IMG/VR virus record: IMGVR_UViG_3300031576_000001
Location: 124,001 to 188,000 of that record
Length of the DNA: 64,000 bases
Strand: one strand, 5' to 3'
Shown piece by piece: positions 5,729 to 63,981 of this stretch (its first letter is position 1; each line of letters opens with the position of its first letter). Under the pieces are notes generated by a model. The model had not been told where the DNA came from and did not search any database. It saw only the letters and a program-made list of their open reading frames with translations. The position numbers were made by a program, and so were the translations under genes.

Positions 5729-6987
5729 CAAGTGCTGCCTCTGTCAAAGAGGCATATGAGCGTGAACAAGAAAAGCTACGACACGAAGGCAACCTAGAGG
5801 ATGACGACAGTTCGTTTCCTCTCCCCCAGGAGCCCGAGGTGGACCCCCGGGTCTACAAAAGTGTTGAGCCGCTCTTGTTCCGTGGCTTTCTTGCGTTGCC
5901 TGCCACGCTGGGCGATAACCTACGGGTCGTCTACAAGAGCCTCAACCACCATGAGTATGAGCGCCTACAGCTAACCCATGGGTCAAGGGACACTGACTTT
6001 TACGTAGACTTCCTGGCGCAGTCCACGTACCTCTTGGGGGGTCAGAACGTACTCTCTTGGGAGCACCGTGAGAAGGTCAAGCGGTTTTATGGGGAGGTGC
6101 CCCCTCCATTGCGTAACCGGATCTTGACCACGCTCTCTGAGTTGAACCGGCAGGCCAGTGACGGGGTGCGGCTCGTCGAGGCGTACGCCATGGAGACCCT
6201 CTCTCGGCTACGGTGGGTTCAATTGTACGGTCTGGACCTCACGTCAACGGCGGTAACGGGGGTAGAGGGCTCTTCCTTGCTGGGGTACAACTGGGGTCAG
6301 CTTCTCTGGCGGGCATTGAACCGGTACCAGGACACCCGAGAGGACATGGACAGGCATTGGGAGAACGCCAAATTCATCGGGGGGTGCTTTGCAGGCAAGG
6401 GTATCAACAAGGTCCATAACCAGGACCGGCGCCGCAAGCGCGAAGAGATTGAGAACCGTATCGCGCGGAAGGACCAAATCTTGCGTGAGGTTGTGCTACT
6501 TGAGAAGAGCCCTGAGAGGCGTGTCATGCGGGACGGGCACGTAGTCAAGTCAGCTCAAACGACCGAGGAGCTAGCCACCCAGCTTGAGCAGTCACTAAAG
6601 GGTGAGGAGGACTTTCACGACCGGGTTGTACGGGCTGTCGAAGAGTACCACGCCAAGGTCAGGGTTGACCGTGAGGCTGAGCTACAGCGGCTCTATGACG
6701 AGGCTGCCAGCAAGGCACAGGGTCAAGGGCTCACGGGCATTGTGGACCGTAAGGGTCTCTCCCGCGAAGAGGTTGAGCAGCGTATCGCCCGGACGAGGGC
6801 GATCATGGCTCAAGGAACGGCACAGAGAATGGTACGCCCCCCGCCGCCTAGTGAGAACCCCTACGAGCGTTTCCGTCAAGCGCCCGAGCAAAGCGAGCAA
6901 AGCGAGCAAAGCGAGCAAAGCGAGCAAAGCGAGCCTGGTAGCCCCAAGGGTGAGGTTCGTCCTTTGCCCCCTCTTAGGTCAAGATTA
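5725..6987 (+). CDS. putative second tail assembly chaperone
   Basis: GTGA-coupled to upstream gene; 'YKSLNHHE' resembles the motif in 4835; first in-frame TTA 6985-6987 overlaps the tape-measure ATG as TT-ATG (standard end 7011). Confidence 0.55.
6886..6934 (+). repeat. 9-bp tandem repeat GAGCAAAGC x5 (EQS repeats)
   Basis: Five perfect copies plus GAGC, directly visible. Confidence 0.95.
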
Positions 6988-9900: not shown

Positions 9901-10445
9901 CAGCGCCCGAGGCACAGAAAACTGCCGAAGAGACCGCCAAAGCCGCACAAGCCCAGGTCGCAGCTACCGAGGAGCAAACCAAGGTTCTTGACACCAAGGG
10001 CATCAAGCTCGACAAACCCTTCCTCAAGACCAAGATTGGTCCTCAAGTAGAGGAAAGTACCCTCTCGGCGCTACGTACCGCCCTCTTTGAGTTCTACGTT
10101 CTACAACATACACCGCTGGCAGACGTGGCTGAGGCGATCAAGGGGGGTCTGGACCCCAAGAGCGCAGGCGAGAAGCTAGTCGCCGGCATGAAAGAGCAAG
10201 GCAGTGCATTCAATGCTGGCGAGACCGTCAAGGCTAACGCAGCCGGAGGCACCGTCATGCGTCCCGCCCCAGGTGAAGCGTTTGCCTCCGTAGCCCCAGG
10301 GGAGACAATCGTACCCAAAGGTGGCGGCGCGGGGGGCATCACGATCAACGTCAACGTAGGGGGCGCACCGCTCGCTACGATCATCGAGGGTAAGGTCAAA
10401 GAGGGTATCGAGATTTGGCAACGCCGTGAGGCGATGAGAGCCTTA
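6987..10445 (+). CDS. tape measure protein
   Basis: ~1150 aa, Ala/Lys/Gly-rich and helical, with central hydrophobic segment; first in-frame TTA 10443-10445 followed by CCCC-GTG of next gene (standard code runs to 10733, a 284-nt overlap). Confidence 0.85.
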
Positions 10446-26300: not shown

Positions 26301-29146
26301 ACAGGGTAAAAAGCTACCCCCAAGGCACCCTTGTCCTTTGGGATGGTGAGCCGTACCACGTAGAGGGGGTCAAGCGAGACGGGGGGGTGACGGTGCTCTC
26401 CCTTGGCGCGGCAACCGACCGGGAGTACGCCGGGGTTTCACTGGCGCGCTCTATCCGACCCGTGCTCCCCGGGGGTGCTGCTGTCAGTACCCAGACGCCC
26501 CTCCTTGACGGTGTGGACCTCCTCTACCGCAAGGTGCCAGGTCAGGTAGGCTCCTTGCTAGAGGGGGTTACCGTGACAACCTCGGGTCAAGTGACGGGGC
26601 TACCCCCTCTGGGTGACAGCGAAGAGCAAGGGGTGGCTTACCGTGGGTACGGCAGCCTAGAGGCCGGGCAGAGTCTACGGGCGAGCTACACCGTTAAGAG
26701 GGTGCCTACGGCGAGCAATGGGTACGCCGGGCAAGTCTTGGTCGCCACGTACACCACATGGTCCCCCGATAGCTTTTACTTCCGAGTTGAGAAGCTGTCC
26801 GATGTGCGCGCAGAGGCAGCCCGGCGCCAGCAAGCCGAGGTTTCAGCGAGTCTACCCTCCTCGGGTCCAAGGCTGAGTAATGACCCTGGGTTGACACTAG
26901 CCGACAGGGGGCGAGCCTCGGTCTTCTACGAAGAGAGCGTGTACCGCAACGATGACGTGGCTTTCCGCTCCTTCCTGCTCTTTACCAATGACCTCGTTAC
27001 CCTCTTGGAGAACGCCAGGCTGGATGCTGTAGGGGTCAACGTGGGGGGGCGTGACGGTCAGCTACGGTTCAACGGCTCGCTAACGAACCCAGCGGTCGTG
27101 ACGGTCAGCGTAGCCCTCAATCAGATTGACGACCTGTACCAAGTAAGCCCTGGACCCTACGTGGTGACAGGTCCACCCTTTGTTGTTACGCCGCAGTACA
27201 CCTATGCCCCCGCGTGGACGCCTGCCCCGCAAAGCCGGTTCTTCAAAGCCAAGAGGCGTCCCTTTGGAGTAGCCTCTGTGGCTGCACTACCCGCGCAGGG
27301 TGACGTGGTTCTTGACCTGGGGGTCCGTAACTTGACCCAAGTGTCTTACGTGAGGGACCGGCAACCCTGGGCGCTTGTCACAGCGCCCGCAGCTTCGGGT
27401 GCCTTTACCGTGTCCGTGGATGACGCTGACGGCGACGCCTACCTCGTCCGCCCCAACTTCGGGGTGGGTAATCAAGTAGACCTCCTACGCCCCGATGGGT
27501 CCGTGGTTGGAGGTAGCCCTTACGAGATAGCCTCCCTCACGCCAACCTCCCTCACGTTCACGGTGGCTCTGACAGACAACGTACCCAGGGGGGCAACGGC
27601 GGTACGCTCTTTGGACGACCTGGCGTACTATCAAGTCGGAAAAGACCTTGGGCTAGACGCAACGGGTGGGCTTCTCACTTACATTGTGCCCTTTCCTCCG
27701 CTGGACGGTTCGGTCCCGCTTGTGCCGGCGGCGCTAGAGGTACTCCCCCCCAACCCGGGGCAGCCTCTTAGCACAGAGGTTTTCCTGTCCCCCGCAGCCA
27801 CCACGCCAGACCGCCCCCCGGTGCTGGACGGTCTAGACCTGGACGACGACGGCGAGGTTAGTTTTCCCTTGCAAAGCCCCACGGACGTTTGCGAGCAAAA
27901 CAGCTTGGGGGTGGGCAGGTTGCCTGACGTGTTTGCTCGGTATGCTGCCCTTGTGAGCGTGACGACACCCACGGAGACCTTCACGGCGAATTTGACGGCG
28001 CTCAACGTGATTACCCGGACAAGCGGGAACTTCGGAATCCTGCCGCTACCCGGTCAACTGGTCCGAATCCTCTCCGGGGTACACGCGGGCACCGCCTTTG
28101 TGCGGGTTGCCTCTGCAACCCTAACGGCGATCACGGTGGACGTACCCTACGGCAGCCTCGACACTGGCTTTACTGCGGTTGTAGGGGTCTCTTTGTTCGC
28201 CTTGACCGGCGCAGGCACCGTCATTGCTTTTGGTCTCACGTTGGAGGATGCCGTAGCTACCTTTCAGACCAACGGGGTTCTACCTGGGTACACCGTGGTC
28301 AATACGGTTACACTGGAGAGAAGCCAGGTCACGGCTGTACCGGACGAGACGCACCTGACGCTGGCTTCCCCGTTGACGCTGGGTGCTATCAATTACAGGG
28401 TAGAGAACCCGTTGTGCTCCTTCTCTGCGCTAACCACGCAGTCTACGGCACTCGACAAGCTGAGAGAGGTTGTGGCGACCAATGACCTCCCTGCCCTCCC
28501 CAGTGAGATAAGGGCGCTAGAGAGGGCGCTGGACCTCATATTCACGGACAGGGCAGGTAACCCGGAGTCTGTCACTGTTACGTTGCCCTCCACGGTAACC
28601 GGTCCCGTCTGGTCTGGCGTGACGCCAGGCGACACCGTGTTCTTCCGAGAGGGTGCAAACAGGGGCGTCTACACGGTGGCTTCCGTGGTGGGCACGGTTA
28701 TCACGGTTTCCGGGGCTCTTTCGCTAGCGGGCTCTGACTTCGTTCGGGTGGTCCAGCTAGAGGGCGTGAGCCAAGAGGGCGTAGTTACGCTGGCTAGCCT
28801 CCTCTTTGAAGTAGACGACTACAACTCGGCATTGATCGCGCTGTTGGTCCAACTAGCGAGCTTTCCAGTGCTTTCTGCATCCTACGCCAACAGGCTGGTC
28901 AGCTCAGAGCTGACCCCTTTGCTTGCGGTTCTTGCTGTGCGTGACCCGGCAGCTTGGGAAACTAGGGTCTTTTCCTTTCTCCGTGGGGGAGAGCGTTTGT
29001 ACGACAAGAGGTTTGCGTGGATAGACGGCAGATTGAACAAGTTGACGGGGACGCTGGCTCGGATAGCGCAGGCAAGGCAACGCCGGCTACAGAACCAGGC
29101 CAGCCTGACCAACCAATTGATACGCCTCCTCAGCCTCAGTGGGTTA
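23354..29146 (+). CDS. very large beta-rich virion structural protein (baseplate/tail associated)
   Basis: ATG at 23354 after TGTGCTACC; ~1930 aa of repeated beta domains with helical C-terminus; first in-frame TTA 29144-29146 (standard end 29254). Confidence 0.7.
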
Positions 29147-38414: not shown

Positions 38415-38708
38415 TAAGCAAGGCGTGGTGTCGGAACCCTCTTCGGTCGCCGTGCTGGACAACTTCTGCGGAGAGAGCAGCATACTGGCGTAAGCCTTGC
38501 ATACGAGAACGTCGAGACGGCGTAGACGATTAGCCTCTTTGCTCAGGCGGATAGCCTCCGCTTGGTCGCGTGCCTGGCAGATCAGGTCGGCAACATCCCT
38601 CATGTGGATCACGCCCAAGAGGAGGTACATGAAGTTCTCGACGACTCCGTTGAGCTTGTCTAGCTCGTAAGGGGTGGCGCCGTGGTTGGGTTTGGGGTTC
38701 TCGGTCAT
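38415..38708 (-). CDS. hypothetical protein
   Basis: ATG at 38708 coupled to upstream gene; first in-frame TTA 38415-38417 removes overlap with baseplate J (standard end 38370). Confidence 0.55.
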
Positions 38709-38974
38709 AACTCGTCCTCTACACCGCAGGCGTTCAGGTCGCTCGGAGGGAACACACGCACTTCCACCGTCTTGACCTCGGGCGTGACCCCAAGGTACTT
38801 TTTGACCCAAGCCTCCCCGTTGCCCTTGCGCACGTCCATCTTGAAGACCGGAGGCAGCCCGTGAAACCTTGGGTAGGGTAGCGGGGCGTCGCCCGGGGGG
38901 TACAGGAACACCTTGTCATGCGTGGGGTACACGTAAACCACCACGCGAGCAATCGGCAGACTGAGAGGCAACAT
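38708..38974 (-). CDS. hypothetical protein
   Basis: ATG after GTGTAAGGGGG; ends GAG-TTA-TGA (standard end 38705). Confidence 0.65.
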
Positions 38975-39438: not shown

Positions 39439-40602
39439 ATGACTGAGGGTTACGGACGAGACGACTACGGCAGGGGTCGCTACGGCTCTACGCCAGCGCT
39501 GGGGCTTACCAATGCCTTCTCGCTGGGTCCAACCTCGGCGGTATTGCAGTTCACGGCGCCCCTGGACCTTACCCACGGGTCCACGCTGGACCCGCTGTCC
39601 TACAGTATACCGGGGCTCACGGTTCTCTCGGTCCAAGTCCTCTTCCCTGACGTACTCCGGCTGGTCACGACGGTTCAAGGGTGGGTTCTGTACGAGGTCA
39701 CGGTACACCCCTCAGTCAGGAGTACCTCTCGGCTACCCATAGAGATTGACCAGCGCGTAGACACCTTCTCTGGGTACGCCACGACCCCCTCCTTCTTTGC
39801 TACGGCGCAAAGCAGCACAAGGGTCCAGGTCATTGCCGGGGCGGACCTCCTTAGTGACCTGGCGCTGGCCGCAGCCTCGTCCTACCAAGTCTTTGACCTC
39901 CTGGGCAACCCGGTACCCGTCATCCTGGCGACGCCTCGTACCTACCTTGGGGTGACAAGGCGGGTAGACCTTGACCTGGGCGTAGCCCTCCTACCCAACC
40001 AGTTCTACCGGGTGGTCGTGGCCAACGTGGTTTTCACGGTGGACGGTCGAAACCTCGTGCCTAACGAGGCAACCTTCCTGTGGAAGCCCAAGCCGTTGAC
40101 GGTAGCGGCAGCCATCCCCGACTTCAGCGGAGAGGTCTCCGGGGGGCTCTTTGGTACGCCGGCAGGCTTGGTCTTCTTCTCGCCCTCCCTAGAGGACGTA
40201 GCCCCTCTCAGCGCTATACAGATCGACGAGCTATCGGTTTGTAGTCGTGCCTACGAGGTCTATGAGTACCCAAAGCCAGTTGACCCCTTGCCCCTGTCCA
40301 CCTTCGGGGGCTACAACCCAGGGCAGACCAACAACACGGCGTATGTCCTGTGGGCTCCCTTCCCCAGACTAAACGAAGCCAAGATGGCGCTGTCTGCCAT
40401 CTACCCCGAGGTCTACGCCGGGGCTAACAGTGGTCGCTGCGTTGCCGTGCTAGACGAGCCTCATGACCCCCTCTTGGTATCCCTGCTCAATAACCCCTAC
40501 TGGCAGACCTTCGGTACGGGCGTCCTGCACCCCTTCAAGACAGCTAGTAACCTGGCACCTATACCAGCCGGCACCACAACCACAATCACCATCGTCCCCT
40601 TA
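39439..40602 (+). CDS. Ig-like-domain virion protein
   Basis: YG-repeat N-terminus; two Ig-like repeats; first in-frame TTA 40600-40602 (standard end 40635 overlaps next ATG). Confidence 0.65.
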
Positions 40603-41302: not shown

Positions 41303-43909
41303 ATGACATTCAAAGAATACGGTCCTGGGGTGTCTGGTTACCTCGACCCCGAGGAAAGAGCATTCCTGACAGGTGTATTTCAGTCCGCCAAGCCAGTGCT
41401 TGACACAGAGCTGAACCTGGCTTCAGACCTTGAGGACCAGATTAGCCAGGGAGTCCCTCTCAGTGGTACACCCTCTGGGTGGCTCACGCGAGACGCTATC
41501 GACCAGCCTGATAACTTCCCCATCTTTCAGGCTGTAGGCGCGTCAAATACCCTGCAAGTCTCAGGTCCGCTACTAGCTAACGTGAATGGTTGGCTTGTCC
41601 GTGTCACCAACACGGGTATCGCCCCTGGTAACCAGCTAGACCTTGGGGCGGGACCGGCGGGTGCGGCTTCCAAGAGGGTGGACTTTGTACTTCTAGAGGT
41701 TTGGCTAAGGCTTCTCTCGGCGGCTCCGTCTACGGTAGGCAAGAGCCCAGCGGCTCGAATCTGGCGTAACGGTAACGTCAAAGTGTCTCCGGCTGACGAT
41801 CTGGTAGTCAACTTCCCTGATGACATACTCGACGTGAATGTGGGCTCCGAGACGACCAAGAGGGTACAGGTACAATACCGTCTCAGGGTGGTTCAGGGGG
41901 TGGACCTCTTTAGTTACCCGGACGGGATGAGTGACCCCCTCATTGTAGCCCGCACGGTGCCCCCCAACGCGGCGACCCCAGACGGGGCAGTGCCCCCGGC
42001 GCTCTACCCTTACCAGAACCAGGACGCTAACGGGGACACTGGGCTCTGGCGGGCTGGCCTTGGGGACGCAACGTCGGCTTCCGACCTGGGGACCGTGGAT
42101 GGGTTTATGTACGCCATCCCCTTTGCGGCTGTTTTCCGTAGAAACACAACCGCTTTTGCCAAGAACAGTAACCATAATGGGGGTATACTCTCCCCCGGAC
42201 CTAGCGACCGCCCCGATGGTCTCTTTCACAACGTCATTGTCCTAGACGACGTGGCGGACCTACGGCGCCTTGTAGCCTCGGAGTCGTGGTCCCTTCCCGA
42301 AGTTCTACAGCGCAACCTTCGGCTCATGCTGGACAACCAACTGAGAACCGAGTGGGAAGAGACCCCCAACGGGGGCGGGGTGTGGGGTCACAGTAATCTC
42401 TGGGCAGACGAGATTGGGCCCGTAGACACGCCTGGCGCTACACTCATCGGTGATTTTGACGCAGTGCTCCGTAGGTTCAGTGACCGGGCTGTCCTAGAGA
42501 TAGCCACGCTGAGGATCACTGGACCCTTCGTGGACGGGCAAGTCATCACCCTCAACCCCACCGTGCTCCCTGTCTACCCTTACGCGGCTTTCAACTGGGC
42601 GTCCTTTGCACCCTCTGAGGTACGCTGGCTCGACGTGGTAAGCGCCCGCTTTGACGGAGAGGGTGTTGCCGGGGCTACCCACGTTGACGCCCCTATCGTG
42701 ACCATGACCGGCTTTGGTACGGACCCGGTAGGTCCAGTGACACTCACGCTGGGCACGGTCTCGACCATACCCATCACGACGGAGGCGCTCTACGTTGACC
42801 TCCTGATAGCATATCCCAACTTTAGGGGTGCTCAAGGCAGTGGCTTGACCCGTACCCCAGTAGCTAACTACCCCTTGGACGTTACCGGGGCGAGCGGGGC
42901 GGTACAGATCAACAACCCGGTGCAACTACCGGCTGCCGCACCCATCCTCTTTAGCCAGCTAAACGTGGGGTCAGACTTCTCACACCGAGAGGTACGGCTA
43001 CAATACGAAACCCTCTCTCAGGTCGTGCTGGTCAATGCCCCGGCTGCCGTGGGTGTCTCGACGATTGACCTCCCCGAGAGGGCACTAGCTATAACGCTCA
43101 TTGAGCGTAGTCCTTTCCCTGGTCCGTTTGCACCCATCGTGGGGGGGTTTACAATAGACGCCTCGGGGCGCGTAGTCACGCTGACCAACCCGGCAGACTT
43201 TACAACCACCGTGTTGGATCGATGGCGCGTGACCCTGCAAGCGGTGCGCCCTCTACCGCAAAACGGCGAGCAACTGACGCTGTACTACCCCGCGAGGGCA
43301 CCCCAGGCGGTACGAAGTGCCTTGCTGGGCGTCGCCAAGGTTTTTCACCCCAAGCTCGTTGGGGACACCTTGCTAGCCATCACTACGGGTAGCGGTAGCC
43401 AGGGAGAGGGTTACCCATTCCCTTACGCTTACGTGCAAACAGGGGGTGTTTACCCCACGTCAATTGGTACGTTTGGCGGTGAGCATGAGCTAGACGGTCC
43501 CGCGACTCTCTCTGTGTCGGACTTCAACGCCACCACAGGCTGGCTCAAACTTCACCCCTACGTGGGGTACGAGCCCACTGGACCTGTCACCTTTACCAGG
43601 GCGCCCACCGACGCTGACATAGAGGGACGTAGCTTCTTTACGGGCGTACCACCTGGGGACTACATACCCAACACGTTTGCACAATTGCTGAGCGACCCCT
43701 CGCGTCACAAAAACGTACTACCCCTCCTCTTGGAGCTACCGTTTGCCAGTCCGCCTCTGGGCTCGCAGGGTGCCTTGTACTTCGGAATCCTCATGAGGTG
43801 GGCCATGGACGCTCAAAACTCGGTCGTTATGAACCCCGACTTGACACTCAACACCACCACACTGTCCATCTTCCGTACCAAGGGTCTCTTGACCGGAAGG
43901 AAGGCGTTA
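41303..43909 (+). CDS. tail fibre/baseplate-attached protein, paralog of 53823
   Basis: N-terminal 'VFQSAKPVLDTELN' baseplate-docking-type motif; first in-frame TTA 43907-43909 overlaps next ATG as TT-ATG (standard end 43993). Confidence 0.7.
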
Positions 43910-52000: not shown

Positions 52001-53188
52001 GGCGTCAAGGTCAAGTGGAACCCTGTCCTTGGACGGTGGGGTCTGGCGGTCTCTCTTGTGTGGTCCGGTCACGGGGCGGCTCAACTTTACCAGACCGGGT
52101 GGAATGTCAGGTCTCTTCTCGACGAGCCGGCAACAACCCTTGGGGTGGGTGTCCGGGTAGGTCGCGACTTCGGTTTGACTGTGGGAACTGCGTACCGCCA
52201 GCCTGGAATGCGCTTCTTGACGCAGAGGCTCACCCCCCTCTTTGGTCTCACGGCGCCAGACTTTGCATCTAGCTTGCCCCAGGTTATCGCGGATACCGTA
52301 ACCTTGGTCAACTCCTCTCAAAACGCCAAGGTGGGCGACCTCTTTGCAGTTGCAGGGAGAGGGCCAGGGGGCACAGATATTCGCAGAACCGCCACCCTTT
52401 TCGGGGGCGCGGCGCTGGACAATGCCAGCGTGGACATGCCGTGGAATGACGCAACGAACGCCATTGATGTGGCAGTGGGTGATTATGACGCTGTGCCCCC
52501 GGACGGAACCTTTACTGTTGTGGGACGCCTCGCTCAGTACAATTTGCTGTTCAACGAAGGCGCTGGCGTTACCTATACCGCGACAAGTCTTACGGATACT
52601 GATGTCTTCCCAGGGTTCATTACCATGGGAGTGCAACCAGGGGACCGTGTTTACGTGGGCGGTAACGCTTTGGTCTACGTGCTGTCCGTGGCGCCCACCG
52701 TGCTCACCACAACACCCTTTGGGGTGCTCCCCCCCGCAGGCACGCACTACACGGTCACACGTCCCTCCTCTTACCTCTACAACCTGAAGTCCTCGCTAAG
52801 CACAATCTTGCTCACGGGTGACGTGGATGCCGCTACCCAGCGCACCCCCCTCTTGGAGTCTACCGGGGGACACACCCTGGAATTCCTACCCAGAGAGGAC
52901 GTGTTCCTGATTACGCTTGGGTACGGCACGCCTTGTGTAGAGGTAGACGGAGCCGAAGGCGTCGCTCTAAGTAACCTCACCCTCGGGGGTAGCCAGGACA
53001 TCACGGTCAAAGTAGCTCAACACCCCTGGCTTGCTCAGTCCGGGCTTGCCGTGGGCTGCGTTGACTCCGGCTCCCCCCTCTACCCCAAGAGACCTTCTCT
53101 GGCTTTCAGGTTCCCCGTGCCTAGAGAAGCCCCCGTGACGCTAAGCAATGTGGTAAGCCGCACCAAAATGCGGTACAAGGGAGTCTTA
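46097..53188 (+). CDS. very large tailspike/fibre-like protein
   Basis: 'VHLRRGEYRLTSTVTVPPGVKITGEG' beta-helix entry motif and many 'W.G..Y.V.W' propeller-like repeats; first in-frame TTA 53186-53188 follows ~2360 TTA-free codons. Confidence 0.7.
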
Positions 53189-56800: not shown

Positions 56801-58142
56801 AAACTTTGAGGGTCCGTTCTTCTTCATCACGAAGGACGATGACGGTGACAGCACGTTCGTACTCAACGCCAACGCGCTGGACCTCAGCAAGTCTACCCTC
56901 GTACCCATTCCCACCTTTACCGCAGGACGGTACGTTATCGAGGCGAGCATCTTCGGTTTTGACCGTAACTCGTTCAACGTAAACTCAGATTTCCGGCTTG
57001 TCCTCTCGCGAAACCGCACGCTGGCGAACAGCTCTGGACCGCTACGCAGCGCTAATCTGGGCGTTACCCTCCCTGGGGTGACGGCGATACTCCCTGGACC
57101 TTTGGCTGCCTCTGACGGCGTGGTCATCAATTACAGTCGAGCGGCTTACCAGGGCGATGCTTGGGGTAGTGAGACGACTTACACGGACACTGCGCAGCGC
57201 ATGGGACCGCTAAGTTCCGTTGATGCATACCAGCTAAGCGCCACACAACTTGACCAGAACGCCCTGACGCGACCTTACCAGAAGCCCCTAGAGGTTCTCG
57301 CCTCTGTGTCATTCCAGACCACGGCTGGCACGGGTAGGTTGGGGATGGAGGCATCGTCGGGTCTAAATGTGCTGAACATTGGGTACGAAAATCCCGCGGT
57401 CTACCCACCACCCTCCCCCGTGGCGGCCCGTCCGAGGAGCATTCTTGGCGCGCTGGTGGGCATCACTGAGTCCTACGGTACAGACCTGTCAGCGTGTACG
57501 TCCAGGCTACCTCTTGGGGGTCTCTTCCGCGATAAAGACTTCCGGGGTGAGCCGGTAGCCACGGGTAAGTCAGCCTTCGTCGTGGAGCCTGGCGAAACGA
57601 ACCTTGGTCTAGCCTCACTGTCCCCAAGAGGGCGCCAAGAGGTAAGGGAGCTACCTGTGACCCCCGTAACGTCTTGCAGCGGAGAGGCTGGTGACGTGAT
57701 TGTCCACGTTGACGGCGAGCAGTCAAGCTACGTGCCCCTTGTGAACTATCGCACCACGCGGGGGGGCTCTTTGTACAGCGCGACGTTGCCCCGTCCGGGT
57801 GGCGAGGTCTCTGCCAGGATGAGCCAGATCACAACGCCCGTAGCCAACCACCCCAACGTGCTCTCTGTCAAAGCCCTGCTTGTTCGCAACGCTTTGACTC
57901 AGAACGGGTTCGGTGAGGTCTCTTCGGGTGGGGAGCTTATGATGCTCATTGCTACCGAGGTTCACCGGCTGAACGTCTCTGGAATCCTGACCGCTACAGG
58001 GGGCGTGACTATCTCGACCAATGGCACCAAAGAGGGTTACAGCGCCGCTGATCTATACCGGATCGAGGGTCGCCCGCTAGAGTCAGACCACGTAGGGCTC
58101 AGGGTCAACCCCTTTGGTATTACCCTGACAAGGCGTGCATTA
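53823..58142 (+). CDS. large tail fibre/baseplate-attached protein, paralog of 41303
   Basis: 'VVWQADKPPLDSELN' N-terminus; first in-frame TTA 58140-58142 (standard end 58148). Confidence 0.7.
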
Positions 58143-58160
58143 GGCTAAGACTAGCTGACC

Positions 58161-58409
58161 TAAGCCCCCTTTGACCGTGTAGCGTAGAGGGTGGGGCGCT
58201 GTCGCGGGCTGCGTGGGGCTGCGCCCTTCAAGCGAGGCGCACCACGCGAGCGTGACCCGGGCTTCCTCTTCGGAGGGGGCTTCTACCTCGTCGAGATACC
58301 AGAGCTTCTTTAGCCAGGCCGGCGCCCGGTATACCAGGCAGAACAGGTTGTCCCACCACCGGGTATTCTGGTTTGCTGGGTCCACCGTGAAAACGTGCTT
58401 GGTAGCCAT
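58161..58409 (-). CDS. hypothetical protein
   Basis: ATG at 58409 after GAGG; first in-frame TTA 58161-58163. Confidence 0.55.
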
Positions 58410-58420
58410 GAGGTAACCTC

Positions 58421-58720
58421 TCAGGGGGTAACGGTTTTCTTGCTCTGGCGCGGGAGGCTGATACGCCCGACCCCGCGGATCTTGGCGAGCGCCGCACAAG
58501 CCTCTTTGAGGCTGCTGCACTCTTTGACCGCTTTGCAGGCAGTACGGCAGTCGTAGATCGTCCAGGCAATGTACTTGACCGGACCACCGCCCAGCTTAGC
58601 GTGTCCAGACCAGTAACGCCCCACCTCGAAGCTGACCATGTACGCCTGGTCGGCGGTCTTGTACGCCCTCTCCCCCCAGGGGATGAGCTTCTCGGTCTTG
58701 GTGCTGTCGGTGGTGTCCAT
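58421..58720 (-). CDS. hypothetical protein
   Basis: ATG directly after the conserved promoter motif. Confidence 0.65.
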   Translation of the reverse strand: MDTTDSTKTEKLIPWGERAYKTADQAYMVSFEVGRYWSGHAKLGGGPVKYIAWTIYDCRTACKAVKECSSLKEACAALAKIRGVGRISLPRQSKKTVTP

Positions 58721-58723
58721 GCC

Positions 58724-58756
58724 CCCCTCTTACGCTTACCCTAGCTCCGAATTCAC
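58724..58756 (-). promoter_or_regulatory. GTGAAY-N16-YGTAAGAGGGG promoter/RBS motif
   Basis: GTGAAT-16nt-CGTAAGAGGGGGG-C-ATG. Confidence 0.7.
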
Positions 58757-58773
58757 AACTTTTGTTGGGGTCA

Positions 58774-58910
58774 CCTTGTACCCCCGGCGTCTCCATACAC
58801 TTTCACGGTTTCCGTGTTCTGCACACTGGAGTCCCCCTCTAGGGGCTCAGTGATAAAAACATCGTAAAATGTGCCAGGGTCATAGGAGACACCTCCGGTT
58901 TTTCCATACG
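58774..58910 (-). repeat. dispersed ~130-bp intergenic element, copy 4
   Basis: Reverse-strand copy with invariant core; 5' box reads CGTATGGAAA, inverted relative to copy 1. Confidence 0.85.
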
Positions 58911-58912
58911 TC

Positions 58913-59299
58913 CTAGGTAGGCTCACCAAGAGGGTTGCGTTCGTTGTAGAGCCGGCAAGCGGTCTCGTGGGTACAGGGGAGACGTTGCCACCAAAGAACC
59001 CCCTTGTCGGGCACGCTGGTGTACCCCCAGAAGGTGTTCTCTCCCTCGTAGGGGACGGCGGGTACAAGCCAGCCGATCTGGTCACCCTCCCCGCTAGCGT
59101 AGGGGCTACGCCAGCCGGGGTCGTGGCTCTTGGCTTGGGCTTTCTCAGCGCAGAGCGCGCAGAAGAGGTCCGTGTAGTTTGCGCAAGTGTTGTGCTCACG
59201 CCACAGGCGGACGTCCCTCGCGCCGCACCCGTCGCAGGCGTAAGCCTGGGGTGTCGCCGGGTTCTGGTAGCTGAAGTCTCGGAAGTTGCGTTCTGGCAT
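58913..59299 (-). CDS. zinc-binding hypothetical protein
   Basis: CDGC...CALC plus Trp-rich 'GDQIGWLVPAVP...WGYTSVP'. Confidence 0.7.
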   Translation of the reverse strand: MPERNFRDFSYQNPATPQAYACDGCGARDVRLWREHNTCANYTDLFCALCAEKAQAKSHDPGWRSPYASGEGDQIGWLVPAVPYEGENTFWGYTSVPDKGVLWWQRLPCTHETACRLYNERNPLGEPT

Positions 59300-59768
59300 A
59301 GCCCTCAACTACACCGAGGATCTCTTGGGCTGCCGTGATGAGGTCTGAGGTGAGACCTACCCGGGGGTCGGTTTGCAGGAAGTTAGGACTACCTACAAAG
59401 AGGGGTAGGTCATCAATCACCACGTAGGTTTGGCATGGCGTAAGGTGAGCTTGAAGGAACCTGCGGATTTCCTGGGCCTTATTGGGTGTACCTGTGCGTG
59501 GGGTAACGTGGGCTAGTTCCCCGAGAAAGCCGTGGGTTGAGAGCCACCCTTGACACTGCTCGACGGAGAACAGGGGGTACCAGTGAGAGGAGAGCACGAA
59601 CACTACGCCCTCTTGGACGAGACCATTAAGGAGGCACACCTTGGAGGTCATGAGGAGTCGCCCGGGGTAGAAGCTGTCCACGTCCCGCTGGCGACTTTGG
59701 CGGCAAAGGTGCTCCGTGGTGTTGAGCACACCGTCAAAATCCACGAGAACGAAGCGCGGTAGGGTCAT
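59241..59768 (-). CDS. HAD-family phosphoesterase (Swiss-Army-Knife RNA-repair type)
   Basis: DFDGVLN, VLSSHW, K..EI and YVVIDD motifs; first in-frame TTA 59241-59243 (standard end 59196). Confidence 0.75.
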
Positions 59769-59819
59769 GTGGGTTAGACTCCTTCTGTACACCCTCTGAG
59801 AGAGGAAAGGTTACACACG

Positions 59820-59987
59820 ATGATCCATCACATGACACATACCGACGTACCCCTACAGCTACGCCAGCGCACAGCCAAAGAGGCATGTACCAAGCTCAAA
59901 GAGAAGCTAAGTGATCCCACGCTGAGTCAGGCTCAGAGGCGGGTGCTACGGGCTCAGTTGACAAAGATCGAGGAATGGGGTAGCTAA
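59820..59987 (+). CDS. small helical hypothetical protein (55 aa, below ORF-track cutoff)
   Basis: MIHHMTHTDVPLQLRQRTAKEACTKLKEKLSDPTLSQAQRRVLRAQLTKIEEWGS*. Confidence 0.5.
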   Translation: MIHHMTHTDVPLQLRQRTAKEACTKLKEKLSDPTLSQAQRRVLRAQLTKIEEWGS

Positions 59988-60128
59988 ACTATGCCTGCGG
60001 TGATGCCTTCGGGCGTTGAGCACTGCCTCTCGTGCAAAAGGCGTGTCCTGCGTACCTCTACTGAGAGGGGGGTATATCTGGAACCCCCTCTGTCTGAGGC
60101 TCTTATACCTCAGACAGAGGGGAACACC

Positions 60129-60449
60129 ATGGAAGCAGCCTTTAGTATTTTCATGTCCTGGCAGGCGGTCTTTACCTGTCTCGTGGTAGCGGGTCTGACC
60201 TACGTGCTGCGTACCGCCGCCGAGGGTGCCGCCCCTGGGCTAGCGTCCGCCTCTTGGTGGACCAAGGCAGCGGTGCCGCTGGCGCCTCTGTGCAACGGGG
60301 CTCTCCTCGGGGTGGTCCCGGGCTACCCCTGGCCAGAGCAAGTGAGCACGCTGGCAGCCCGTATCTTCTTTGGGTTTGTCTGCGGGATGTTTTCCATGAT
60401 TGTCTACGCAAGGGCGCGTGACTTCATGAAGGGGCAACAAGGCGGCTGA
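60129..60449 (+). CDS. holin-like membrane protein
   Basis: ATG after GAGGGG; three hydrophobic segments and basic C-terminus. Confidence 0.55.
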   Translation: MEAAFSIFMSWQAVFTCLVVAGLTYVLRTAAEGAAPGLASASWWTKAAVPLAPLCNGALLGVVPGYPWPEQVSTLAARIFFGFVCGMFSMIVYARARDFMKGQQGG

Positions 60450-60534
60450 CCGACAAGGTTAGCAGTTGGTAGGAGTTAGCTATGATCAACATAGCAGTCG
60501 GCACTTTGCAACAAGCTGGAGAGTCTTTCTGAGT

Positions 60535-61059
60535 ATGGTCACCTGTGCGGGTATCAAAGAGGCTAGTTTCTGGGTCTTCCGGTGGTTTGTAGCCCCCATC
60601 GTCGCCCTAGGGCTCATTCTCTTGGCGCTGACCTCCTCGGGCTTTGGTAAGACGTTCCCCATCGGGGGCTTGCTTCGCAGGCTCTTCGGCAAAGAGGCTC
60701 CTGAGCGCACCAAGGCTGAGGTCGCCTCGTCCCTTGACCCTGAGAGGGTGGACCCCGCGGGTAACCTCATTCCTCTGGGTACGCCCGACGCCAAGGGGTT
60801 CGCTCAGTTCCCTGTGGTGCCTATCGCAGTGCCCGATGTCTTTGATGACCCGGAGACGGTGACGTTCACCACGCCCGCAGGCGTAATAAAGACTGTGGAC
60901 CTCCCCAAGGGTGTAACCAGCGACAAGGTGGACAAGGTGGACAAGGTGCTTATCATTACCCCAAGTGTCGTCGTGGTGACCGTAAAAGACAGCAGCACAG
61001 TAAAAGCAGCTACCGTTGACGAATTGCTTGAACGCTACAGCAAAGAGGGCGTAGGATAG
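60535..61059 (+). CDS. membrane-anchored hypothetical protein (start uncertain)
   Basis: One transmembrane segment 'FVAPIVALGLILLALT'; follows holin-like gene. Confidence 0.55.
   Translation: MVTCAGIKEASFWVFRWFVAPIVALGLILLALTSSGFGKTFPIGGLLRRLFGKEAPERTKAEVASSLDPERVDPAGNLIPLGTPDAKGFAQFPVVPIAVPDVFDDPETVTFTTPAGVIKTVDLPKGVTSDKVDKVDKVLIITPSVVVVTVKDSSTVKAATVDELLERYSKEGVG
60922..60948 (+). repeat. 9-bp tandem repeat GACAAGGTG x3 (DKV)
   Basis: Directly visible. Confidence 0.9.
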
Positions 61060-61061
61060 CC

Positions 61062-61409
61062 ATGACCACGATAGCTGAACGTGTTGCCAGTCGCGCCGCC
61101 GCCTCTCCGCAGAACGGAGTGCAGTGGGTACGTGATGAGATCCTCATTCAGAAGTGCTCTACGGGGAAGACACCTATCGTCGAGGTCGCGGCGTACTTGC
61201 ACAACATCATCAAGAGCAGCCAAGAGATACACAAGCTGCTTAGTGAGGCTACAAAGAATGCCCAGGATGCCGTGAGTGGTGGCGACACTATCACGGCTCA
61301 GGATTTGGAGAGGGCGATCTACAAAGAGGCTGTGCTGCCGGCGGGGGGTGAAGACCCTCTGGGCAAGCTGCTCGCCAAGGTGATTGCCCATGGGGACTAC
61401 GTTTACTTA
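61062..61409 (+). CDS. hypothetical protein
   Basis: ATG 2 nt after upstream TAG; first in-frame TTA 61407-61409 (standard end 61448). Confidence 0.65.
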
Positions 61410-61996
61410 CCCTTGGCTTTGGAAACGGGCGCAGTCCCCTTCTTGTGACTACGTGCCTTGACGGGTTTGAAGTGCTCAGGGGGTGGCTCCCTGGGTCGCT
61501 TGATCTTGGTGACGGGCTTAGCTGACGGGTCGAGGAGGTTGATTGCCTGGCAGAGGTTCTCTGAGCAAAGACCTAGCGCCGGGTTGACCTTGACGAGGCG
61601 GGGGGCGTAGTCAGGCATGAACTTGAAGACCTCTTCGCTGTCCAGGGCGACCCAAGAGGTTGCGGGGTGCTCAGCGAGGAACCTGCGGATCGTGGTGGCT
61701 TTGGCGGGCTCTAGCTTGTGATTGACCAGGGCAGACACTTCCCCAGTAAAGCCGTGGCTTTTCAGGTGCGTGTTTAGCTGCTCCACGTCATACCGTGCCC
61801 ACCACCGAGAGGTCACCACGACCTTACCCTTACCTACCAAGTAGTTCAGCCTGCGAACTAGAGGAGGGCAGAGGCGTTGAGCAGGTTGTCTCTTGAGCCC
61901 CTCTGGTGACAGCCTCTTGGCTAGGTTGCTCAGGTACACAGGGGTATTCAATACCCCATCCAGTTCTAGGAAGATGAACTTTACGGGCTCCGTCAT
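61403..61996 (-). CDS. degenerate HAD-family (Swiss-Army-Knife type) paralog
   Basis: ELDGVLN (first Asp replaced by Glu), VVTSRW, WVALDS. Confidence 0.7.
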   Translation of the reverse strand: MTEPVKFIFLELDGVLNTPVYLSNLAKRLSPEGLKRQPAQRLCPPLVRRLNYLVGKGKVVVTSRWWARYDVEQLNTHLKSHGFTGEVSALVNHKLEPAKATTIRRFLAEHPATSWVALDSEEVFKFMPDYAPRLVKVNPALGLCSENLCQAINLLDPSAKPVTKIKRPREPPPEHFKPVKARSHKKGTAPVSKAKGK

Positions 61997-62066
61997 GGTT
62001 TTCAGACTCAGAAAGTACACCGAGGTAGCCTCTTCGCCTGAGAGGGGGTAGCCTTAGCCTTTAGCC

Positions 62067-62663
62067 ATGAGATACCGAGTCCTCCTTGCTGTTACCCTCT
62101 TCGCCCCCACCGTGCTCGCCCAAGACCCTGTGCAAACCGAGAACCCCGCGGCTTGTACGTCGGACAGTGTTTGCATACCCAGGGAGGATCTAGCTGTTTT
62201 CGTTCAACTTTTGAAAGAGCGGCAGTGCTTGGTACGCACCAAGCCTGAGATTACCCTCTCGCCCATCCCGCTGGTCATTGACCGACAGGGTAGAGTCTAC
62301 GGAGAGACAAAGACCACCCTACTCATACAATGGTGTAACTTTGAGATTACAGGGGGTGGGCCCGTCAAGATTGACGTGGCGGTACAGGATGAGCCCGTGC
62401 CCCCACCACCCAAGCCGTCCCTCTGGCAGCCCGCGCTAAGGCTAGGCGTGGGCTACACAGTGCAAGCCTCTTGGGATGCTTTCTTGCTAGTCTCCCCTCT
62501 GGCGTACCGGGGCGTGAGTCTCAACGGTCACGCTGGGGTGCGCTCCATAGGTGGCGGTTTGGGCTACGGTGTAACCTCTTACGGAGGCTTTTACGCTGGG
62601 TACAGCTACAGCTACGAGGGTAAGCACGGGGCTACGCTGGGCGTATACGGCCGGCTCTGGTTA
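62067..62663 (+). CDS. secreted / outer-membrane-type protein
   Basis: Signal peptide, Pro linker, amphipathic Gly/Tyr beta strands; ends in Trp at first in-frame TTA 62661-62663 (standard end 62717). Confidence 0.6.
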
Positions 62664-62674
62664 GTCCACCCCGC

Positions 62675-63298
62675 TAAGAGGGTGCTACCGACTAGAAAAG
62701 CGTCTTCACCAAGGTAGCGCTCGTACAAGGCGCTTAGCTCGTCGCAGGTTTGCTGGACTTGACTCTGGTAACTCTCGTCGATGCGACAACCCCAGAGGTA
62801 CAGCGACTTGTAGAGACCGTCCCTTGTCACGTTGTGGAGTGTGTTAGCCAGCGCTCCGTGCCCCAAGGAGTTACCAACCCCACCAAAACCGCGGGTAACC
62901 CCCCTACCCAGCGTCAACTCGCAACGGTACACGGCACCCTCTTTGGTGACCGTCACTTTGGAACCCAGCCTGTCCCTATCGCCCTTAGCCCAGAGGGTAG
63001 CCAGACTTATCGCCAGGTGCTCCATCCCAGGCACGTTTCTCTTTTTGTCCAAGAGAACCCGTCGCAGTCTGTTCCATTGGCTTTCACTGATACGGTCGGA
63101 CCAGAAGTTGTCTGCATAAAACCTGTCCCCCAGGTGCTCAAGGAACGCCTCTCGGTAGGACGCCCCGTTGGTTTTCCGCACCGGACCCTCTGCAAACCGA
63201 GCCGTGAGCGAGAAAAGCCCGTTTCGTTCCTGGCAGGTTAGCTGCCAGTCCCTCTTGACGTTGTTTATCACGATGGCTGTGCTCAAGTAATCCAGCAT
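62675..63298 (-). CDS. hypothetical protein
   Basis: First in-frame TTA 62675-62677 leaves an 11-nt gap to the convergent gene (standard end 62612). Confidence 0.6.
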
Positions 63299-63339
63299 GG
63301 CGTGTGGGGTCTCCAAAAGGGGTTCTGCACGGCTTTGCC

Positions 63340-63657
63340 ATGGTGGTACACCTTTTCCCGGCAGCTAGGGCTGTGCAACGCCGTATCGTAGCAAGATGGG
63401 TAGACAAGGGCACGCGAAAGCTGTCACGAGAGGTATACCGTCGCATCGGGGAAGACCCGCAAAGCGCTCAGTACCTCTCCGGGCTTCTACGGCGTCAAGC
63501 TGGTGACGTAGTGTCACTCCCCCCCTACGACCCCGCCCCGTTCAAGGAGATCGTAGACACTTGCCTCATGGTGACTGACCGTGACCCGGCGCGACTAAGA
63601 GACCTTGGATCAGCCTTGGACAGCCTGGCGCAAGCTGGGGCTAAAGCTACCGGGTGA
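63340..63657 (+). CDS. hypothetical protein
   Basis: Helical ORF filling the gap between flanking genes. Confidence 0.5.
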   Translation: MVVHLFPAARAVQRRIVARWVDKGTRKLSREVYRRIGEDPQSAQYLSGLLRRQAGDVVSLPPYDPAPFKEIVDTCLMVTDRDPARLRDLGSALDSLAQAGAKATG

Positions 63658-63702
63658 CAGCGGTGACGGGTGACAGCACGGTTTGCGGTATCTGCCGCGA
63701 GC

Positions 63703-63981
63703 TAAGCTCCAGATGTAGCTGAGGAGCCGGAAGAACATGCGCGAGACAAAGCCCTCTTCCTCGACGGGGCTTGGCGTCACGGGCGAGGGGGCGTCGTACA
63801 CGACCGGGGGTTCCTCTTCGGGTTCAGTCTGGACGCTGGGTTCCGTGGTCGTCACGCTCGGGGCAACCAAGGTGACGTGGCTCACGTAGAGTTTGCCGTC
63901 CCTACGGACCTCTTTGTTGGACACGGCGGCACCGAGGCGGGTACCGATGATGTGCGGGTGCGTACCGAAATGTGACGCCAT
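63703..63981 (-). CDS. hypothetical protein
   Basis: ATG after GAGGG; Pro/Glu linker and amphipathic C-terminal helix ending at first in-frame TTA 63703-63705 (standard end 63610). Confidence 0.55.

Follow-up and report, generated by a model that had tools for sequence, protein, structure and literature searches.

DNA sequence evidence that the leucine codon TTA serves as a fourth stop codon in a huge phage from a cave metagenome and in related phages

The conversion of a sense codon into a stop codon has been described in mitochondria. In the mitochondrial code of Thraustochytrium (NCBI translation table 23) the codons TTA, TAA, TAG and TGA all terminate translation, and UUR codons act as stops in the mitochondria of Pycnococcus, where unusual mutations in the release factor mtRF1a have been offered as a possible explanation (PMC6821328). 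In sphaeroplealean (Scenedesmus) mitochondria (table 22) it is UCA and UCG that have become stops; there the codon appears to have disappeared first, a cognate tRNA gene is lacking, and a candidate release-factor change is known (PMC6821328). Phages with unusual codes have also been described, but in these the direction is opposite: in Lak, crAss-like and some huge phages TAG or TGA is read as an amino acid, suppressor-type tRNAs are encoded by the phage, and the altered code is noticed through the low coding density that results under code 11 (PMC7162821). Two further systems single out a codon without making it a stop. In Streptomyces and its phages UUA is a rare codon whose decoding by the bldA tRNA is limiting, but it still specifies leucine and lies inside regulated genes (PMC10732093). 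In genomically recoded E. coli, the unassigned UAG codon has no dedicated reader, and it gives mistranslation, frameshifts and tmRNA-mediated degradation and blocks phage growth (PMC6207430).

The present work concerns a 64,000-nucleotide stretch of DNA (the window; positions 124,001 to 188,000 of IMG/VR record IMGVR_UViG_3300031576_000001), which lies in a 322,633-bp huge-phage contig (GC 58.6%) from a cave metagenome, estimated to be 68% complete. A first-pass annotation had observed that the overlaps between convergent gene pairs in this window are resolved if genes are ended at their first in-frame TTA, sometimes on both strands at once, and it had proposed that TTA acts as a stop. The observation holds, and all four of the sets of coordinates given for it check out (Table 1). 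The interpretation is supported as well, and applies to the whole genome rather than to convergent pairs alone: the effect is found on both strands and for all gene sizes. The stop set that results is that of table 23, and a leucine codon has become a terminator in both cases, but the mitochondrial examples are tiny organellar genomes with a dedicated organellar release factor, while the trait is found here in phages of 320-450 kb translated on bacterial ribosomes, with no release factor of their own found, in at least four genomes and probably two independent lineages. No earlier report was found of a sense codon turned into a stop outside mitochondria, or of this trait in phages or bacteria.

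Table 1. TTA codons in the window at which genes are inferred to end, with the support for each. G001, G003 and G004 are relatives of the phage; L007, L015 and L042 also contributed orthologs; P0124, P0125, P0126 and P0129 are database homologs. "First" denotes the first in-frame TTA.
TTA codon	Strand	Gene ended	Product	Support and effect on gene packing
62661..62663	+	62067-62663	198 aa, signal peptide, ends ...GRLW	Ends at Trp198, where the G003 ortholog (203 aa) ends; P0124, P0125, P0126 and P0129 end in W at residue 198; sister and third phage have TGG TTA at the same place; first TTA of code-11 ORF 62067-62717, which overlaps ORF 62612-63316 (-) by 106 nt; gene is listed when TTA is set as a stop
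62675..62677	-	62675-63316	213 aa	First TTA (TAA on the + strand), 21 codons before the standard TAG; removes the 106-nt convergent overlap, leaving an 11-nt gap; no homolog available to check the end
61407..61409	+	61062-61409	115 aa	G001 ortholog (110 aa) projects to end at residue 115, and TTA is codon 116; overlap of 61062-61448 with 61403-62020 (-) falls from 46 to 7 nt
58140..58142	+	53823-58142	1439 aa, tail-module protein	Orthologs in G003 and G004 end within 1-2 residues; sister ortholog (1434 aa) ends with TGA; a TTA at codon 11 of the longest ORF lies upstream of the true ATG at 53823
58161..58163	-	58161-58520	119 aa	First TTA, 7 codons before the standard TAA; 18-nt gap to the convergent + gene; no homolog available
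59241..59243	-	59241-59792	183 aa, HAD_SAK_2	TTA 15 codons before the standard TGA; Pfam domain covers residues 15-150; ortholog end not decisive
63703..63705	-	Runs beyond the window end (genome 187703-188938)	411 aa	TTA 31 codons before the standard TGA; removes the 48-nt overlap between 63304-63657 (+) and the - gene, which otherwise ends at 63610
53186..53188	+	46097-53188	2363 aa	Separates this gene from the in-frame gene 53192-53809 (205 aa) with no standard stop between them; downstream product matches, from its second residue onward, the start of separate 209-219-aa genes in G001, G003 and G004; G003 ortholog of the upstream gene ends here; sister also has TTA at this boundary
43907..43909	+	41303-43909	868 aa	TTATG motif, the ATG beginning at the final A of TTA; orthologs in G003 and G004 end at residue 868, and TTA is codon 869
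40600..40602	+	39439-40602	387 aa	Orthologs in L015, L007, L042 and G001 end at residue 387
38415..38417	-	38415-38810	131 aa	First TTA, 15 codons before the standard TAA; removes a 26-nt convergent overlap with the baseplate gene 34949-38395
29144..29146	+	23189-29146	1985 aa	About 45 orthologs from related huge phages all end at query residues 1982-1987 with 0-4 residues left over; the 36-aa standard-code tail has no counterpart
10443..10445	+	6987-10445	1152 aa	Orthologs in G003 and G004 end at residue 1151; sister ortholog ends with TGA at the aligned site; next gene starts with GTG at 10450; a 284-nt same-strand overlap is resolved
6985..6987	+	5725-6987	420 aa	Overlaps the ATG at 6987 of the next gene; sister ortholog ends with TAA at the aligned position
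4788..4790	+	4107-4790	227 aa	TTA 5 codons before the standard TAA, with a second TTA in the tail; sister ortholog also ends at a TTA

The distribution of TTA within reading frames is far from that expected by chance. TTA is the rarest in-frame codon (152 of 94,433 codons; there are 824 and 574 occurrences in the other two frames), and 97 of the 152 (64%) lie in the last 40 codons of standard-code ORFs, compared to an expected fraction of 0.122 (binomial P = 2e-50); the next-highest of the other 60 sense codons reaches 17%. When TTA is added to the stop set, 86 of 318 genes (about 27%) end on it, and coding coverage changes only from 86.5% to 86.2%, a cost given as 0.2 points, whereas treating any other codon as a stop costs at least 6 points. 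The first-pass annotation had named in advance the outcome that would overturn its proposal, namely that other rare codons would perform equally well when each sense codon in turn is treated as a stop. They do not: TTA removes 6.7% of codons while resolving 7 of 11 overlapping convergent pairs, and every other codon removes at least 38% (median 71%).

The sequence that follows TTA resembles the sequence that follows normal stops. The codon-usage score falls from 0.21 to -0.12 after TTA, compared to a fall from 0.18 to -0.07 after normal stops, and GC3 drops in the same way. The distance from TTA to the next standard stop (median 14 codons) is like that after TGA, TAA and TAG (15-17), and there is no enrichment of back-up stops. 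Gene packing becomes normal when TTA is read as a stop, since the largest convergent overlap falls from 336 to 48 nt, and TTA forms TTATG stop-start overlaps like TAATG and TGATG.

In order to determine whether TTA occupies the true ends of genes, the genes were compared to homologs. Only 1 of 70 TTAs lies inside a region covered by homology, compared to 61-86% for each of the other 60 sense codons, and that single case is a gene boundary; the internal TTAs examined turn out to be gene boundaries or to lie upstream of the true start, and none was found that aligns with residues of homologs. In 27 genes, orthologs from standard-code relatives end with a standard stop at or within 3 residues of the position of TTA (66 comparisons, 70% exact and 94% within 3 residues), the stops in the orthologs being TGA 49, TAG 13 and TAA 4 times. 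Two gene pairs that are separate in relatives are divided here only by TTA, 3 nt before the next ATG. TAA, TAG and TGA all still terminate: genes that end on them end flush with their orthologs, and standard-code ORFs cover 86-94% of the genome, depending on the overlap allowed. The phage therefore does not share the defining feature of the stop-to-sense recoded phages, although it does carry a tRNA with anticodon CUA, and its coding density under code 11 looks normal. TTA is the rarest codon in all relatives too (0-1.3 per 1000 codons across the family), but three relatives with the same GC content show no terminal enrichment, and neither do about 100 related loci.

A reading frame outside the ordinary protein genes provides a further test. 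The tag ORF of the phage's own tmRNA reads ANDNVEAAPLALAA and is then followed directly by TTA, and in one of the other phages with the trait the tag ANDNVEALSLAA is likewise followed by TTA, whereas relatives end their tags with standard double stops.

Three further phages from other datasets share the trait. In a sister phage 47% of TTAs are terminal, and at orthologous stop sites the pairs are TTA/TTA 5, TTA/standard 11 and standard/standard 13. In a third phage two TTA stops were verified. In the fourth phage, which is the source of the second tmRNA tag, 60% of TTAs are terminal, there are 105 TTA stops, and 69 comparisons with standard-code relatives are flush. TTA swaps with TAA, TAG and TGA at orthologous stop sites. 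A tree in which the trait falls on two separate branches of the phage family suggests two origins.

The best explanation of these results is that UUA is not translated as leucine in this phage but ends translation, and this is held with high confidence, although it rests on DNA comparison alone: no protein or RNA evidence was obtained, and no C-termini or ribosome footprints were examined, since no RNA run or proteome containing this phage was found. What the analysis shows is the absence of TTA from conserved coding positions, its placement at or within 3 residues of the standard stops of orthologs, the non-coding character of the sequence after it, its role as the sole separator of neighbouring genes, its use to close the tmRNA tag frame, and its free exchange with the three standard stops among related phages that share the trait. 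The mechanism, by contrast, is inferred. In this view nothing in the infected cell decodes UUA efficiently, and a class-I release factor with relaxed reading of the second codon base releases the peptide at UUA; direct reading by a release factor is considered slightly less likely than not.

The tRNA complement bears on the first part of this inference without deciding it. The roughly 40 tRNAs of the phage cover CUN and UUG (anticodons GAG, UAG, CAG and CAA) but not UUA, while the relatives G001 and G003 carry tRNA-Leu(UAA). The tRNAs of the host were not available for comparison, however, and the fourth phage carries an atypical class-I tRNA with anticodon UAA, which is isolated and lies in the syntenic slot of the present phage's amber-suppressor-like tRNA, so UUA may be read through at some level there.

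The identity of a factor that reads UUA has likewise not been found, and how termination at UUA works is not known. Domain searches detected no RF-1, PCRF, eRF1 or Pth domain in the 322 kb of this phage and no RF-1 domain in five relatives or on contigs C1 and C4 of the fourth phage; no release-factor gene was found in 332 kb of a second TTA phage or in complete genomes of relatives. A phage-encoded factor could lie in the missing part of this incomplete record, and recognition of UUA by a host factor was not assayed. Bacterial release factors are not known to accept a pyrimidine at the second codon position. TTA stops occur in all genome regions, with no early/late division, and the factor is therefore most likely host-encoded, or else an unrecognized phage protein. 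The appearance of the trait in two separate branches also points to something outside the phage, such as hosts with this code, but that the host itself uses the code is no more than a tentative possibility. The bacterial contigs binned with the fourth phage use TTA as an ordinary sense codon, and if that bacterium were the host the host-code idea would fail; the bin is clearly mixed, however, and the phage encodes an outer-membrane-type protein, so the link is doubtful.

The alternative that survives best, although it is considered unlikely, is that UUA is an unassigned or “hungry” codon rather than a recognized stop, so that ribosomes stall for lack of a tRNA and the peptide is freed by codon-independent rescue (ArfB- or ArfA/RF2-like factors) or by slow near-cognate release-factor action. 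The lack of anticodon UAA in a tRNA set that covers the other five leucine codons, the failure to find a release-factor gene in the phages, and the near extinction of TTA across the family, which is the classical route to an unassigned codon, are all consistent with this. Against it, two phage tmRNAs end their own tag frame on UUA directly after ...LAA, and if stalls at UUA were resolved by trans-translation this would loop. Unassigned UAG codons in recoded E. coli give near-cognate suppression, frameshifting and tmRNA-mediated degradation rather than clean ends (PMC6207430), while here the codon is used at a quarter of gene ends and in the tmRNA itself. The lack of any enrichment of back-up stops after TTA, the two gene pairs separated by TTA alone and the TTATG overlaps also count against it. 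A related possibility, a programmed +1 frameshift at a hungry TTA onto an overlapping TAG, would require TTA to be followed always by G (or A), but the base after the 27 verified TTA stops is G 11, C 9 and T 7 times.

Editing of UUA to UAA in the mRNA, which would leave the translation apparatus standard, is not excluded by DNA data but is very unlikely. It would require editing at about 90 sites per genome that share no sequence context beyond the codon and its reading frame, including a site inside a tmRNA, while about 1,400 out-of-frame TTAs within genes would have to be spared or tolerated, and no such editing is known in bacteria or phages.

It is less likely still that TTA codes for leucine and that the pattern reflects rare-codon bias together with real but unconserved C-terminal extensions, or regulatory TTA codons of the bldA type (PMC10732093). 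The rarity of TTA in all relatives and the tRNA with anticodon UAA in the fourth phage can be cited in favour of this reading, but it is contradicted by the tests described above. Relatives with the same GC content and the same TTA rarity show no terminal enrichment, TTA occupies the ortholog stop position itself rather than a position before it, and the tails look non-coding. Reading TTA as leucine would also fuse genes that are separate elsewhere, destroy the C-terminal LAA of two tmRNA tags, and create convergent overlaps of up to 336 nt. The GC content of 58% and the outer-membrane-type protein argue in addition against a Streptomyces host. A sequencing or assembly artefact, such as systematic miscalling of TAA as TTA, might be suspected because the genome comes from a single sample and only one run holds it, but this is contradicted by an independent Logan assembly of that run, which is identical over window positions 58001-63800 (5.8 kb, at a depth of about 11), by the presence of the trait in three other genomes from other datasets and assemblers (Logan SRR29476925, JGI 3300081839 and GenBank JBBAQX01) with TTA stops at partly different genes, and by the continued abundance of TAA stops.

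The first-pass annotation had also remarked that the terminal Trp which results from ending gene 62067 at TTA is typical of beta-barrel-like C-termini. This is only partly supported: a Foldseek search against the PDB gave only weak matches to small transmembrane barrels, but the terminal Trp is conserved in the family, and an AlphaFold model of the protein (pLDDT 88.6) has long strands running to the C-terminus.

The window belongs to a single contig of 322,633 bp, Ga0247727_10000022, of which it covers bases 124,001-188,000, and which IMG/VR classes as a linear virus that is about 68% complete; the only sequencing run found to hold the contig is labelled a cave metagenome. The GC content is 58.6%, and ARAGORN finds 39 tRNA genes, of which 38 are clustered at 21-31 kb, while an extra tRNA with anticodon UGU (Thr), seen by Rfam but not by ARAGORN, brings the count to 40. 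The window holds a tail and baseplate module with very long genes, including Baseplate_J and an SLT domain. A megablast search of 24 kb of the window against GenBank phages gave no match, but about 100 related loci of 200-450-kb phages exist at 50-62% protein identity, and the phage is a member of a large family of huge phages.

The first-pass annotation had claimed that convergent gene pairs near the end of the window are resolved by TTA, sometimes on both strands at once, and every coordinate in that observation proved to be right (see the table). The sequence on which it rests is also confirmed, since Logan's independent assembly of the same run is identical over window positions 58001-63800. 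The interpretation that was offered, in which TTA acts as a stop codon, is supported as well, and it extends well beyond the reported region, to the whole genome and to at least three other phages.

Coordinates of the genes, TTA codons, RNA genes and other elements discussed in the text (empty cells: strand not given)
Reference	Position	Strand	Feature
window	62067 / 63316	+ / -	Convergent gene pair overlapping by 106 nt in code 11; an 11-nt gap remains if each gene ends at its first TTA
window	62661-62663		First TTA of the 62067 gene
window	62675-62677		First TTA of the 63316 gene
window	62067-62663		Gene of the 62067 protein, ended at TTA
window	53823-58142	+	Gene ending on TTA, 18 nt from the TTA that ends 58161-58520
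window	58161-58520	-	Gene ending on TTA
window	61062 / 62020		Gene pair whose overlap falls from 46 to 7 nt
window	63610-63657		48-nt overlap that vanishes with the TTA at 63703-63705
window	63703-63705		TTA
window	23189-29254		Standard ORF of 2021 aa, first TTA at codon 1986
window	53186-53188		TTA at the boundary between two in-frame genes
window	59241-59792	-	HAD_SAK_2 gene
window	61403-62020	-	HAD_SAK_2 gene, paralogous to the preceding one
window	58637-58970		Pile-up of short contigs from the same run
window	58698-58791		Stretch replaced by 102 other letters in one low-depth contig
window	58421-58720		Gene flanking the variable or repeated element
window	58771-59199		Gene flanking the variable or repeated element
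genome	30256-30633 (locus L197, 10256-10633)		tmRNA
genome	30730-30800		tRNA with anticodon UGU (Thr)
genome	307803-307877	-	Isolated tRNA with anticodon CUA
genome	83670-86387	+	905-aa ORF, LAGLIDADG plus N6/N4 DNA methylase
fourth phage, contig C4	88023-88382		tmRNA
fourth phage, contig C4	121826-121901		Class-I tRNA with anticodon UAA
locus L221	10001-10867		Public gene call reading TTA as Leu
locus L219	10001-10849		Public gene call reading TTA as Leu
locus L211 (sister phage)	20319-21194		291-aa public gene call reading TTA as Leu

The genome-wide behaviour of TTA was evaluated in 288 long, non-overlapping standard-code ORFs comprising 94,433 codons. TTA is the rarest codon, with 152 occurrences (1.6 per 1000, compared to 3.5 per 1000 for the next rarest), and the depletion is specific to the reading frame, since 152 TTAs occur in frame against 824 and 574 out of frame. 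Of the in-frame TTAs, 64% lie in the last 40 codons, where 12% are expected (P = 2e-50), while the next-highest codon reaches 17%. Adding TTA to the stop set leaves coding coverage at 86.2% against 86.5%, whereas the next-best codon drops it to 80%, and with four stops 86 of 318 genes end on TTA, 121 on TGA, 56 on TAA and 55 on TAG. The stretch between a TTA and the next standard stop behaves like sequence after a normal stop, both in its length distribution (median 14 codons against 15-17) and in the fall of the codon-usage score and GC3, and the largest convergent overlap shrinks from 336 to 48 nt. The annotation had itself proposed a permutation test, in which the other sense codons are treated as stops in turn, and had stated that equal performance by other rare codons would count against its reading; when this test was run, TTA cut off 6.7% of codons and resolved 7 of 11 overlapping convergent pairs, while every other codon cut off at least 38%. 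TTA stops occur in all parts of the genome, on both strands and in genes of all sizes, and no early/late division of the TTA-ending genes was seen.

As controls, three relatives with the same GC content (58-60%) were analyzed, G001 as a whole genome and G003 and G004 over their first 400 kb. TTA is also the rarest codon in these relatives, but it shows no terminal enrichment (14-21% against 12-14% expected), and G001 and G003 encode tRNA-Leu(UAA). None of the approximately 100 related loci shows the pattern, except the window's own contig. Several standard-code relatives (related loci L004, L008, L009, L010, L056 and L122-L124) have no in-frame TTA at all in about 4,400-7,600 codons, and G001 and G003 have 0.5-0.6 per 1000; TTA is close to extinct across the family, which is the precondition expected by the codon-capture model.

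About 45 orthologs of the 2021-aa ORF all end at residues 1982-1987. Across the genome, 27 genes have their first TTA at or within 3 residues of the position where orthologs in G001, G003 or G004 have a stop; this corresponds to 66 comparisons, of which 70% are exact and 94% lie within 3 residues, and in which the ortholog stop is TGA 49 times, TAG 13 times and TAA 4 times. Genes without TTA end flush with their orthologs (92% within 5 residues), and this includes TAG-ending genes, so that TAG remains a stop and the recoding of TAG suggested by the tRNA with anticodon CUA can be rejected. Only 1 of 70 TTAs in ORFs that have homologs is spanned by an alignment, against 61-86% for all other codons. 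That TTA, and the one at 53186-53188, are boundaries between two in-frame genes that are separate in relatives, where the next product begins 3 nt later and aligns from its first or second residue with the start of the orthologs. The remaining internal TTAs for which homolog information exists are likewise boundaries, or they lie upstream of the true start. The base after the verified TTA stops is G, C or T (11, 9 and 7 times), which excludes a +1 slip onto TAG as the explanation, and four sites form TTATG stop-start overlaps.

For the genes of the original observation, the 62067 protein ends at Trp198 exactly where its G003 ortholog ends, and the database homologs P0124, P0125, P0126 and P0129 also end in W at that position, while the 61062 protein ends like its G001 ortholog. 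The 62067 protein belongs to a family of secreted proteins of about 200 aa found on huge-phage contigs, and it has a signal peptide, two nearly invariant Cys (C54 and C90), and a strand-rich C-terminal half ending in an invariant-looking Trp. An AlphaFold model of the protein is confident (pLDDT 88.6) and has six long strands running to the C-terminus, but matches to solved barrels are weak, and a Foldseek search against the PDB gave no match at E <= 0.001. A scan for promoters and terminators over 58-64 kb of the window was at background level.

A reading frame outside the protein-coding genes shows the same behaviour. Rfam finds a phage tmRNA (52.8 bits) which ARAGORN misses, and its tag frame reads ANDNVEAAPLALAA, followed by TTA, with the next standard stop 28 codons further on. 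Relatives have the tags ANDNALVPMQMAA and ANDNSTAFTAKAA, each followed by two standard stops. The degron of a tmRNA tag is required to be terminal, and the canonical ...LAA degron is C-terminal in this phage only if TTA terminates.

Three further genomes share the trait. In the sister phage (Logan contig SRR29476925_27097, of which 78 kb plus 12.6 kb were read, with proteins that are 64-82% identical), TTA is the rarest codon and 47% of TTAs are terminal; at aligned C-termini the stop pairs are TTA/TTA 5 times, TTA/standard 11 times and standard/standard 13 times, and its copy of the region has TGG-TTA at the end of the 62067 ortholog and TTA at the 53186 boundary. The third phage (JGI Ga0672874_0000004, 458 kb, of which 38 kb were read, GC 62%) has 7 in-frame TTAs, all of which lie in the tails of three small genes, and two of which are ortholog-verified stops. 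The fourth phage comprises contigs C1 and C4 (332 kb) of G006, a mixed GenBank MAG labelled Lysinibacter sp. isolate EUL_204; 60% of its 163 TTAs are terminal, its stop usage is TGA 131, TTA 105, TAG 49 and TAA 49, its tmRNA, which ARAGORN also fails to call, has the tag ANDNVEALSLAA followed by TTA, and 69 of its TTA stops are flush with standard-code relatives. A four-marker tree groups the present phage, the sister and the fourth phage together (100/100), and places the third phage inside the standard-code group with G003 and G004 (98/99). The tree has seven taxa and no outgroup, so the inference is tentative, but two origins of the trait are the most parsimonious reading.

What reads UUA is not shown by these data, and the account of the mechanism is accordingly inferred. 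No RF-1, PCRF, eRF1 or Pth domain was found in the present genome, and no RF-1 domain was found in five relatives, two of them complete; in G006 the RF-1 domain lies only on the bacterial contigs C9 and C17 and not on the phage contigs C1 or C4. A Pfam scan of the 20 largest ORFs of this genome without homologs in relatives gave no translation factor, and found only LAGLIDADG plus methylase, DUF7487, Dam methylase, a metallophosphatase, and weak radical SAM and deoxyribosyltransferase hits. The phage's tRNAs read CUN and UUG but not UUA; an attempt to derive its tRNA-Leu(CAA) from a relative's tRNA-Leu(UAA) by alignment gave no answer, because the tRNAs are too diverged. Recognition of UUA by a release factor is favoured, and this factor is probably host-encoded, given the even spread of TTA stops and the two phage lineages. 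Pure stalling at UUA followed by rescue is unlikely, because the tmRNA frame itself ends on UUA, back-up stops are not enriched, and unassigned codons in recoded E. coli give mistranslation and degradation rather than clean ends.

The fourth phage has an isolated class-I tRNA with anticodon UAA at the position syntenic with this phage's isolated tRNA with anticodon CUA, which is of the amber-suppressor type although TAG still ends genes. The two tRNAs are only about 60% identical, so their orthology is uncertain, but the arrangement may represent a suppressor slot that targets whichever stop is in use, and it may allow regulated read-through.

No host was identified for any of these phages. 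A first scan of genome contigs found nothing, and a second found four mis-binned MAG contigs of unrelated phyla. The bin that holds the fourth phage is mixed, with five tmRNAs above the Rfam cut-off and at least 332 kb of huge-phage contigs, and its bacterial contigs use TTA as a sense codon, but nothing ties that bacterium to the phage. Some of these bacterial contigs almost never use TGA as a stop in long ORFs (1 of 16 in C8 and 1 of 18 in C18).

It is possible, though this can be proposed only tentatively, that the determinant lies outside the phage, and that there are bacteria, hosts of these cave, soil and sediment phages, whose own translation system terminates at UUA through a release factor that accepts U at the second codon position. 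This would be the first sense-to-stop code in a free-living organism, and two phage lineages would have adapted to it independently. Alternatively, the phages may carry a wholly new kind of termination factor that is not homologous to RF1, RF2 or eRF1.

In the literature searched, sense-to-stop changes are described only for mitochondria: UCA and UCG in Sphaeropleales and UUR in Pycnococcus (PMC6821328), together with translation table 23, which has the same stop set as the one found here. Phage code variants described so far instead turn stops into sense codons, and are found through low coding density (PMC7162821); no report of TTA as a stop in phages or bacteria was found. The change is thus of a type already described, but without a precedent that could be found outside organelles. 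Its presence in phages that use bacterial ribosomes would show that the bacterial termination system can acquire a fourth stop with a pyrimidine at the second position, and would open a direct search for the factor that reads it. Since TTA is almost extinct across the family, and at least two lineages, on the tentative reading of the tree, then reuse it as a stop, the family also offers a natural test of the codon-capture model.

Screens that rely on low coding density under code 11, such as the one used for huge phages, would not flag such a code, because under code 11 these genomes simply acquire longer ORFs. Public gene calls for these phages already read TTA as Leu (proteins P0121, P0122, P0128 and P0001, and the calls at related loci L221 and L219), so that they carry false C-terminal tails of 18-93 residues or fuse neighbouring genes, as in the 291-aa call in the sister. 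The test used in the present work, which combines the terminal enrichment of each sense codon with the detection of tmRNA tags that have no standard stop after ...AA, is easy to run at scale and may uncover more such codes and their hosts.

The window and its surroundings also contain other features. The two paralogous genes with the HAD_SAK_2 domain carry the HAD domain of "Swiss Army Knife" RNA-repair proteins, and the sister phage also has one, plus an RNA ligase gene (PF09414) elsewhere; no link to the codon change was tested for these genes. The 905-aa ORF combines a LAGLIDADG endonuclease domain with an N6/N4 DNA-methylase domain, and relatives and the sister show intein and homing-endonuclease signatures in DnaB and other genes. 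The short contigs that pile up at 58637-58970 are 90-95% identical and have a summed depth of about 50 against 11, which marks a variable or repeated element between the two flanking genes that is probably shared with other phage strains in the sample.
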